Shown here piece by piece: positions 60,718 through 64,000 of a stretch of 64,000 bases of DNA (positions within the stretch are counted from its first letter, which is position 1; each line of letters opens with the position of its first letter). The notes under the pieces are model-generated. The model worked only from the letters and a program-made list of their open reading frames with translations. It was not told where the DNA came from and ran no database searches. This DNA is from Corallochytrium limacisporum Hawaii. Taxonomy: Eukaryota > Protista > Pluriformea. The position numbers were made by a program, and so were the translations under genes. Location of the stretch: contig PDIP01000063.1 in assembly GCA_002811645.1 (NCBI GenBank), positions 73,431 to 137,430 of the forward strand, given 5' to 3'.

Positions 60718-61964
60718 GGGGAGGAGAGAGAAGGGGATATTAATTTGTTGCGTGGACGATTGGTTGCGTATGAAGACAAAAGCAAAATATACCGATGCCC
60801 TGGTACGTATTGCACGGGACCCTATATTTTTTTTTCCTTTTTGTTTGCTACCTCCCCTCATTTTTTTTGTTGTTTTTTTAGTTTGCTTTTGAATTTTCGA
60901 TGAGGCTGGGTTGGTGCGGGTTTCCTTCTCGTGGCCTTGGGCCCCCGGGGGGGGGGGAGGGGGGGGCTTTCCTCTCTCTCTCTTAGACTTCAGAAACGGA
61001 GAGGGAGCGAGGGGAACACAAAACGGCTATTATTGTTTACCGTTTTCTTTTTCAAAGTCTCTTTTTTAATTCCTTTGCCTTTTTCTTTCGGTTTTTTTGG
61101 TTCATTGGGCCCTGTGAATTTCTGATCCACTTTCCTTGCTTGTCTTTTTGAAACATCTTTTCTTTTTGTATTTTTTCTTTGGTCTTTCACTCTTCACACA
61201 CCAAACGCCGCGAACGAGAGAGATGCCATGTGTGTTTAACCCATATTTTTTTCTTTTGGCAACCTTGGTCATGGTAGTGTTGTGTGGACAACTTTGGGTA
61301 CGTGGTATTTGTTTTTTCCTCTTCTTTTTTTTTTTGGGTCTTTTGGGTTGGGTTGGGTGGAGGGAGGAGAAGGAGGCGACACGGTGAACGGAGTTTTGAG
61401 AGTTCGAATGGTTGGAGAGATGTATGTAAGCGTTGTGTGTGTTGTATTTTAGGTCTTTTGATGGCCAGACACTCCAGCAGCACCAAAAAAGAATGGTGGG
61501 TGAATTTTTTGTTTGTGTTCAGAAAGTGAGAGTTTCTCTGTTGCGTGTTTGGGTTTGAGTTTTTCTTTAAATTTCCGTCTCTTTTGGCCCGCATCGGTCC
61601 GCAGTTTCCCCAAAATATTTTAAAAAAAAAAAACAAGAAAGAAAAAGAGAGCGAAAAGGGAAACCAGAGACAGACAGCGCCCGTGAAAACAAAAAATAAA
61701 CAAAAGACAGCGCAGCGGTGGTGGTGGACATACAAAGGAATGAAACAGGAGAAGAAGGAGTGAAGTACGAGGCCGCCCCCCCTCCCCCTGGGACAAAAAC
61801 ACTACGTTGTCCCCGAGAGAGGCTGGCAGTGCACGCAGCAAAGGCACAGGAGGAGGAGCAAGACTTGAGGTCGTCGTTGGTGTGCGCGCCTCTGAAGTGC
61901 TTGTGTTGTCTTGTGCCACTACTGATGATGCTCGGGCTCTCGGTTAGCTTGTGTTCTGCTCCTA

Positions 61965-63494
61965 CTACTCATCATCCTTCCGACCACTTTCACCAGCGTG
62001 CATCCAGCCAGCGTAAGCCACGGCCGCATGCTGCTGCGGATGGTGACTGCCAGAGTCCTGCTGCTGGTGTGGTGCACCTGATGCGCCAGCCATTTGGCCG
62101 GAGGTGTGCTGTTGTTGAGATGGATGCTGAGGATGTTGCTGTTGCGACGGATGCTGAGGATGTTGTTGCTGCTGTTGTTGATGACGATGATGCTCATGAT
62201 GTTGGAGATGTTGATGAGAGGGATGATGATGTTGTTGCTGGTGGGGAGTGCCCTGCTTCAACGCCCCTTCAGAGGCTGCCTGCGCCTGCGGTGGTGGAGG
62301 GTAGATGGATGGATTTGAGTGTCCGTGAACGCTGGTCAGGGAACTGACCAGCGCTAGCATGTCGTCTCCACCTTCGTCGTATGGATTGGACCAAATGCTC
62401 GAGCCTGACTGGGCCGGTCCGGCACGGCTGCCCGGAGTGCCGTAAGCGGCGCCGGAGTGGCTGGTTTCCAGCTGGTCCAAGGATCCAAGTCGGTGAGATG
62501 TCAGCGACGTCTGTGTGGAGGCACGCAGATCGGACGCGCTCTGCACGCCACTAATGGACGAAACAAAACTCGTGGTGGCAGACAGATCCATGGACCCGTG
62601 GTGGTCGGTAGAGCGCACAGAGTGCATTGAACCGCGCATCTGCTCCGCACTCGCCGCTCCAGACAAGAGGCTTCCAACAGACTCGGCCGCGCCGAACTGT
62701 GGGACGCGACCGGTGCTGCTTCGCTGGCTTGAAGAGCTGGCGCGGCGAATATCACTTGCAGTTGGGGCCGGCGCGGCAGTGGCTGCGGCTCCTGACCATT
62801 CCATCTGAGGCAGATCAGTCCCTTCCATCGATGGACGGTGCGGTGTAATGGATGCACGACGCTGCGGACTGATGTGCTCTGGAGCAGGGGGTCTGGTTGC
62901 CTGCCCGGCTTCGGAACTATAAGAAACTGAGGAGCTCGGATCGCTATGACGGGACACTTTCATGTTCGCCGCCGCTCCCTGAGCAGCCCACTGGCCAGCG
63001 TACATGGGATCCACGTTGGCCGGAGGGTCATTCATTGGACGAACGGGGCTGCTATTACTCTCTTCCATCTGCATAGCGGCAGCCGATGACGTTGCGCCGA
63101 CATCCTCGTAATTGAGGACTCCAGTCCGGCACAGGGCCTCTGCAGCATCAAGGTCAATGCCGGAGCCTCCAGCACTTGTGAACTCACTGCCCAAGATTCG
63201 GGCCAACTCTTCTTGACGGCGTTGCTGTAGTTTAATCTTCTCTGAAAATCGCCGGGGATTGTCCGGAGGACGTCGTCCCTTTCGCACTGCCTTCGGCTTC
63301 TCGCCTACGACAGCTCGATGGAGTCTGTTTTCCAATTCATTGATAAATTCTTGCGCACTCTGATTGGATTTGTCCTTGGGCTTGTCACCCGAAGCGCTTC
63401 CTCGCGATGTACCCTTACCCCGTCTTCCCATAATCTTGGGAGAGGAGAATTCTAGTCTGTATCGATGACGGTCCACGCTTGCATACACGTCCAT
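61965..63494 (-). CDS. CRTC/TORC-like protein: TORC_N CREB-binding motif, S-rich regulatory region, Q/H-rich tail
   Basis: DNPRRFSEKIKLQQRRQEE versus animal CRTC NPRKFSEKIALQKQRQAEE. Two RRAS sites. The start could instead be the ATG at 63431. Confidence 0.8.
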   Translation of the reverse strand: MDVYASVDRHRYRLEFSSPKIMGRRGKGTSRGSASGDKPKDKSNQSAQEFINELENRLHRAVVGEKPKAVRKGRRPPDNPRRFSEKIKLQQRRQEELARILGSEFTSAGGSGIDLDAAEALCRTGVLNYEDVGATSSAAAMQMEESNSSPVRPMNDPPANVDPMYAGQWAAQGAAANMKVSRHSDPSSSVSYSSEAGQATRPPAPEHISPQRRASITPHRPSMEGTDLPQMEWSGAAATAAPAPTASDIRRASSSSQRSSTGRVPQFGAAESVGSLLSGAASAEQMRGSMHSVRSTDHHGSMDLSATTSFVSSISGVQSASDLRASTQTSLTSHRLGSLDQLETSHSGAAYGTPGSRAGPAQSGSSIWSNPYDEGGDDMLALVSSLTSVHGHSNPSIYPPPPQAQAASEGALKQGTPHQQQHHHPSHQHLQHHEHHRHQQQQQQHPQHPSQQQHPQHPSQQQHTSGQMAGASGAPHQQQDSGSHHPQQHAAVAYAGWMHAGESGRKDDE

Positions 63495-64000
63495 TCAACT
63501 TGTCTGTAATTGGTCTCCTTGAACGTAAACCAAGTGCTCTGTAGATATGGCTTGGATAAGGATCACGAGCTATGGTTCATTAATCGCCCTGGGGTTTCTT
63601 CTTTAGCTTTGGATACGGAATGTCCTTCCATATGGTTTTACATGAAATTGATCATGCGAGTCTGATATAGGACACCGTGTGATTCCTCAAATACCACAGA
63701 AACGAGTTCGAAAGAAAACCGCTATACAATGTTACGTCAGGGTCTAACGGCGAACGGTTTCCCATCGCGCAGAAAGGTTACTCGGTTCCAAAGCACCCAT
63801 CTCGAAGGTGAAGACGGGATAAGCACCGCAGCAACCCACGCAAACCCAGAACAGCGCTAGGAAAGAAGAACAGACGGGGGAAAGGGGTCATATCGGTTTC
63901 AAAATCAAATACACAAACAGCTCCAACCTCTGCACAAACTCCAGCGAGCAGCAGGGCGCAGCACACAGGCCCTCCCATATTATTGGTTGCGGATCAGAGG

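Follow-up and report, generated by a model that had tools for sequence, protein, structure and literature searches.

A CRTC-related protein with a TORC_N-type, probably CREB-binding helix in the unicellular holozoan Corallochytrium limacisporum

The window analyzed here is a 64-kb stretch of DNA from Corallochytrium limacisporum. Its minus strand carries the gene of a CRTC-related protein, which was compared with animal CRTC1-3 (TORC; Pfam TORC_N, PF12884) and with the structures of the CRTC2 CREB-binding domain (PDB 4HTM, 5ZK1, and 5ZKO). The features of the locus were as follows:

61411..63625 (-): longest transcript contig (L029:1842-4056), with a 5' UTR of ~130 nt and a 3' UTR of ~550 nt
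61965..63494 (-): ORF of the CRTC-related protein, intronless, 509 aa from M1, present in EukProt
63306..63359 (-): amphipathic acidic helix, residues 46-63, common to the metagenome protein P0002
63267..63299 (-): basic patch, residues 66-76, directly before the TORC_N helix, common to P0002
63180..63260 (-): TORC_N-type helix, residues 79-105, equivalent to CRTC2 18-44
62850..62861 (-): RRAS, residues 212-215, PKA-type, neither SIK nor mode-1 14-3-3 consensus (definitions in PMC5325614)
62736..62747 (-): RRAS, residues 250-253, PKA-type, hydrophobic at -5 but not at +4 relative to S254
62337..62393 (-): short acidic-hydrophobic patch, residues 368-386, recognized in the sequence
62025..62243 (-): low-complexity tail rich in Q, H, and P, spanning about residues 418-490, predicted disordered

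The whole length of ORF 61965-63494 (-) was spanned by a 2218-nt contig without joints from a probable RNA run, and a second probable RNA run covered most of 61411-63625. The flank upstream of the transcript was silent. The contigs themselves are strandless, and the transcript strand was assigned from the ORF. A second strain differed from the ORF by five substitutions, of which four were synonymous; all four indel sites listed fell within the 3' UTR. The jointless contig, the silent upstream flank and the mostly synonymous strain differences indicated that the gene is real, unspliced, and very likely expressed. M1 has a weak start context and follows immediately on a stop codon; the alternative start M22 (ATG at 63431), in a better context, would give a protein of 488 aa.

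The assembly comprises 24,109,830 bases in 286 contigs, and the gene lies among intronless genes on a contig of 265 kb. The housekeeping genes of the window were intronless as well, and the 51-kDa subunit of complex I encoded there gave higher scores against animal chains than against fungal ones. The genome of C. limacisporum was reported to measure 24.1 Mb and to contain 0.0 introns per kb of coding sequence; the same study placed Corallochytrium with Ichthyosporea in Teretosporea, the sister group of all other holozoans (PMC5560861). The host is near certainly a non-animal holozoan, in line with the pre-metazoan origin proposed in the preliminary description.

A search with the motif region against 1.8 billion representatives retrieved three proteins, P0002, P0003, and P0004, and a later profile search added P0005. 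P0002 is a partial protein from the GOS marine metagenome, P0003 is an environmental protein, and P0004 and P0005 are paralogues of Amoebidium parasiticum (EukProt EP00123 P014206 and P021899). The full-length homologue search returned no protein beyond the query itself, the search with the two Amoebidium motifs no match besides its own query, and the ESM Atlas feature search no match. Capsaspora, choanoflagellates, other ichthyosporeans, and fungi were not among the matches of these searches, which were too narrow to indicate absence. A metagenome scan with the motif alignment yielded two further loci that were discarded: L032 was a chance match in an off frame of a bacterial contig, and L031 was the first exon of a mammalian, possibly human, CRTC2, which was excluded from the comparisons. 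No description of non-animal CRTC or TORC_N proteins was found in the literature, in which few subscription journals were covered, or in the supplements of PMC5560861. The Amoebidium proteins already bear a precomputed TORC_N label in databases. TORC_N outside animals is therefore latent in databases, though we found no paper on it.

The 509-aa ORF had been reported to contain a TORC_N motif at 63207-63260, and this was borne out: 13 of the 18 residues at 79-96 (63260-63207, the motif as first read) are identical to CRTC2 18-35 (72%; PDB alignment, E 0.008). TORC_N was the sole Pfam family matched by the protein (E 9e-4), and the 24.1-Mb genome yielded no TORC_N match besides the single copy in this ORF. 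The Pfam check that had been proposed supported homology by way of the relatives; the query alone scored 20.3 bits at full length and 24.3 bits as a fragment, under the gathering cut-off of 25, and its match spanned positions 1-18 of the 63 in the profile. P0003, P0004, and P0005 were above this cut-off (50.6, 28.8, and 35.7 bits). An HMM built from their six motif copies, with the query excluded, gave 33.8 bits for the query ORF. The remaining ORFs of the window reached 4.7 bits at most, and 20,000 shuffled versions of the protein no more than 12.8 bits. Searched against 177,635 PDB sequences, a profile of six non-animal copies matched only three CRTC2 chains (E 2e-9), with the next match at 0.92. 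Because relatives above the cut-off link to the query, the homology of its helix is secured, and by sequence comparison the motif is homologous to the CREB-binding helix of CRTCs.

A basic helix arising by chance or convergence, or an animal-derived contaminant, would be another explanation. The match is short (18 profile positions) and under the Pfam cut-off, and fold searches with the single helix found nothing specific. This explanation was, however, largely refuted and is very improbable: the PDB matches were to CRTC2 only, the relatives exceed the cut-off, and the HMM score was far from that of any shuffle. As for contamination, the gene sits among intronless genes on its 265-kb contig, is transcribed in two strains according to the probable RNA runs, and encodes no animal CRTC domains.

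According to papers that cite the CRTC2-CREB structures, R20 and K21 of CRTC2 touch DNA and F22-M45 form a helix that binds the bZIP of CREB with 2:2 stoichiometry (PMC13571231), and the F40A change abolished binding to CREB (PMC13123801). The query equivalents are R81/R82 for R20/K21, F83 for F22, I87 for I26, L101 for F40 in the ungapped register, and F105 for M44. The contact residues R, R, and F are kept; position 40 is Leu instead of Phe in the ungapped register, with a 4-residue gap as the alternative register, and the A27 equivalent is Lys. AlphaFold (AF2) predicted a helix at residues 83-107 with a pLDDT of ~90 in its core; like the helix of CRTC2 in its complex, it begins at the residue equivalent to F22. 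P19, R20, F22, I26, Q29, R32, and Q33 were invariant in all eight non-animal copies, in which positions 21 and 25 are basic. Positions 36, 39, and 40 were hydrophobic in all eight (position 40 being Leu in seven), and position 44 in six of eight. HMMER aligned the second half of one Amoebidium copy with a 4-residue gap. Since F40 is Leu and the Amoebidium alignment carries this gap, the second half of the interface differs from that of CRTC2. Either F40 is replaced by Leu in register, or the hydrophobic block lies one turn earlier. The whole binding helix seems to be present in the query, with a divergent second half.

The protein resembles CRTC2 in the length and start of its helix and in the first 18 residues of the CREB-binding domain. 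In the query as in animal CRTCs, positions 40 and 44 (F40 and M44 of CRTC2) are hydrophobic, and one helix precedes an extended, disordered body rich in Ser. In contrast to animal CRTCs, the motif is reached only after 57-78 residues with an extra helix and a basic patch, which agrees with the N-terminal extension noted earlier, and F40 is Leu. P0002 is similar in this respect: it is 58% identical over 80 residues, which take in its one TORC_N helix as well as the basic patch and the helix upstream, and no intron was present in the part seen, as in the query. However, it ends ~130 residues past the helix and has no similarity to the query beyond it. The amphipathic helix 46-63 and the basic patch 66-76 occurred in P0002 only among the relatives, and the former was not seen in the ichthyosporean proteins. 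The basic patch is a candidate nuclear localization signal or extra DNA contact. The helix 46-63 was also considered as a decayed first TORC_N repeat, and its register and residues do not fit.

AlphaFold predicted residues 180-509 to be unstructured. Ser and Thr make up 65 of the 221 residues at 180-400, where six RxxS/T sites occur, and residues 401-490 consist of 31% Q and 22% H. The disordered Ser-rich region, the two RRAS sites (212-215 and 250-253), and the Q/H-rich tail of the preliminary description were all recovered. Conservation with the closest relative extended over only ~80 residues, and the proposed activation regions had no homologue. The acidic-hydrophobic patch 368-386 may be an activation motif.

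Seven bZIPs at or above the Pfam cut-off were detected in the genome, and the expectation of a CREB-family member proved correct. A 164-aa ORF at G000:C176:84448 (L030:2874-3368) contains a bZIP near its start, for which CREB1 was the best PDB match (E 8e-12). It differs from CREB1 K303-V315 by one change, and the equivalent of R314, which is required for CRTC binding in CREB (PMC11773003), is kept. Contact positions are kept on both partners. The helix could also serve mainly another bZIP, of the ATF6/CREB3-like or AP-1-like kind, instead of the CREB orthologue. Among the seven bZIPs, two others keep Arg at the R314 position, and animal CRTCs act on c-Jun, c-Fos, and ATF6 as well (PMC13123801). 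However, the CREB-specific stretch around C310-R314 was nearly intact in the CREB-type bZIP alone, which makes this alternative improbable. Binding of the query helix to CREB is probable.

No KID was found in the CREB ORF or elsewhere in the genome, and no Q2 domain or other Q domain was found in the 164-aa CREB. A pKID match in the genome was a 24-codon frame only and was rejected. An extra upstream exon of the CREB gene is unlikely. The CREB of Capsaspora likewise has no KID (PMC4736632). A CBP-type KIX was present in the genome, so that the KIX half of the KID/KIX route is shared with animals, but the CREB here has no KID. The pS133-type route therefore appears to be absent.

The modules that surround the helix in animal CRTCs were sought in both the protein and the genome. 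TORC_M was found neither in the query (Pfam, E up to 10) nor in the genome, where the control of the search was uninformative. The C-terminal transactivation domain TORC_C was detected in neither, in agreement with the earlier statement that the acidic TORC_C is absent, and the proposed Pfam check of the query for TORC_M and TORC_C thus came out negative. Animal CRTCs are held by three 14-3-3 sites, of which site II has the form LxB[ST]xSxxxL and sites I and III are of the GGSLP type (PMC5325614), and calcineurin docks on CRTC1/2 through PxIxIT, which CRTC3 does not have (PMC6317279). Pattern scans of the query gave no SIK/14-3-3 site I, II, or III (S70, S171, and S275 types), no GGSLP, LxB[ST]xSxxxL, or RxxS/TxP, and no PxIxIT. 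Compared with animal CRTCs, the query thus lacks TORC_M, PxIxIT, sites of the S171/S275 type, and a GGSLP site behind its helix, and it has a Q/H tail instead of an acidic TORC_C. Because all of these modules are missing, it is, as judged from its sequence, a CRTC-related TORC_N protein and not a full CRTC: it is CRTC-like at the docking step, while several defining features failed.

An older CREB-CRTC switch had been envisaged. Such a switch, with diverged sites, would consist of phosphorylation by a SIK-like kinase or MARK, cytoplasmic retention by 14-3-3, and release on dephosphorylation. 14-3-3 was present in the genome, together with at least five kinases of the MARK/SIK group, and the activation segment of one of them (L018:547-2400, G000:C275) was most similar to that of SIK3. 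MARKs can phosphorylate CRTCs (PMC5325614), and the Ser/Thr-rich body with its six RxxS/T sites could offer substrates. However, all five kinases checked carry a MARK-type KA1 domain, L018 included; this protein as a whole scores higher to MARK and is possibly intermediate between MARK and SIK, whereas L024 is a clear MARK. Sites I-III, RxxS/TxP, and PxIxIT were missing from P0002 as well as from the query, and no strict SIK/14-3-3 site or RxxS/TxP was found in the Amoebidium proteins. A full switch is therefore quite unlikely, and the envisaged older switch was not supported. If there is any phosphorylation control, the PKA-type RRAS sites are more likely to provide it than a SIK/14-3-3 code; both lie outside the regions alignable with relatives, and conservation was found in no relative.

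The two Amoebidium proteins and an intron-rich environmental gene (L013) carry the non-animal version of the helix, like the query (hydrophobic at 36, 39, and 40), and no other CRTC domains were found in them. However, they have two tandem N-terminal helices, an eh1-like motif, and a conserved Arg-rich C-terminal block, whereas the query has one helix and neither of the two motifs. The exons of L013 were assigned by eye, exon by exon, and not from a spliced model. In P0003, P0004, and P0005 the tandem helices were spaced 35-36 residues apart at the N-terminus, and a single chain might occupy both CRTC sites of the CREB dimer. The eh1-like motif F[ST]IDx[IL]L was located at 186-192 of P0004, 255-261 of P0005, and L013:2209-2229, within divergent surrounding sequence. 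It fits the eh1 consensus FS[VI]xx[IL][LM] (PMC4943189) exactly in P0004 and approaches it as FT variants in P0005 and L013. This suggests that these TORC_N proteins may be CREB-tethered co-repressors. The Arg-rich block was found at 222-252 of P0004, 308-340 of P0005, and L013:2527-2610 and includes RRxT/S-like sites as well as a GGS[LMV] element; phospho-control or nucleic-acid contact are possible roles.

These relatives bring up the possibility that the query, too, is a dampener or repressor docked on CREB, either as a competitor or as a co-repressor adaptor, in which case tethering would be the ancestral role of the helix and the effector motif would have been swapped between lineages. 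The eh1-like motif is kept in both Amoebidium paralogues and in L013, TORC_C was not found, and the isolated helix is dominant negative in animals (PMC11773003). Groucho has been reported in ichthyosporeans and Corallochytrium (PMC4943189), and a weak TLE_N match was found in this genome. However, pattern scans detected no eh1 motif in the query or in P0002, the ichthyosporean C-terminal region had no match in this genome, and the query has a Q-rich disordered tail. Such tails are typical of activators. A repressor role of the query is thus unlikely. An eh1-like reading of residues 16-22 was rejected, as they do not have the key I/V at position 3.

The explanation that we favor, with somewhat better than even confidence, is that the protein is a pre-animal CRTC-related cofactor of CREB, docked by its helix and activating through its disordered tail in place of the missing CREB domains. 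Helix 83-105 would pack along the bZIP dimer of the CREB of this genome on CRE DNA, with R81/R82 in contact with the DNA. Recruitment of the transcription machinery would fall to the disordered Ser-rich body together with the acidic-hydrophobic patch and the Q/H tail, and the cofactor would thereby provide the activation surface that the 164-aa CREB, without KID and Q2 domain, does not have. Of the CRTC-like coactivator initially proposed, the TORC_N homology stood; coactivation is the moderately favored direction over repression, and an eh1-like repressor motif is present in relatives.

The docking module seems to predate animals, which may not hold for the familiar on/off switch. The CREB-CRTC interface would accordingly go back to an ancestor shared by animals and teretosporeans, separately from the animal switch. 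The absence of KID from CREB both here and in Capsaspora gives a testable order, in which a bZIP-docking cofactor came first and KID and SIK/14-3-3 control came later. More tentatively, and with well under even confidence, we speculated that the CRTC helix was the original cofactor route of holozoan CREB and predated the animal KID. In Corallochytrium this free docking module would have been joined to an activating tail; ichthyosporeans would have doubled it and combined it with a Groucho-binding motif, and only animals would have wired it to SIK/14-3-3/calcineurin and TORC_C. A pre-animal origin of animal transcription cofactors is a common finding, which limits the novelty of this result. 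Naturally occurring variation (Leu for F40, tandem helices, and the eh1-like motif) is also informative about the 2:2 interface of CRTC and CREB, a drug target.

Some minor features of the locus were also observed. The DNA-contacting start of the helix, residues 81-84 (63252-63243, -), is at the same time an RRxS PKA-type site, the Ser of which is not kept in most relatives. A five-codon upstream ORF was located at 63563-63580 (-), within the 5' UTR defined by the longer transcript contig. The longest transcript end lies ~110 bases downstream of the CRE-like octamer TGACGTAA at 63732-63739 (-), which is one of two such octamers in the 64-kb window; autoregulation through it is possible.
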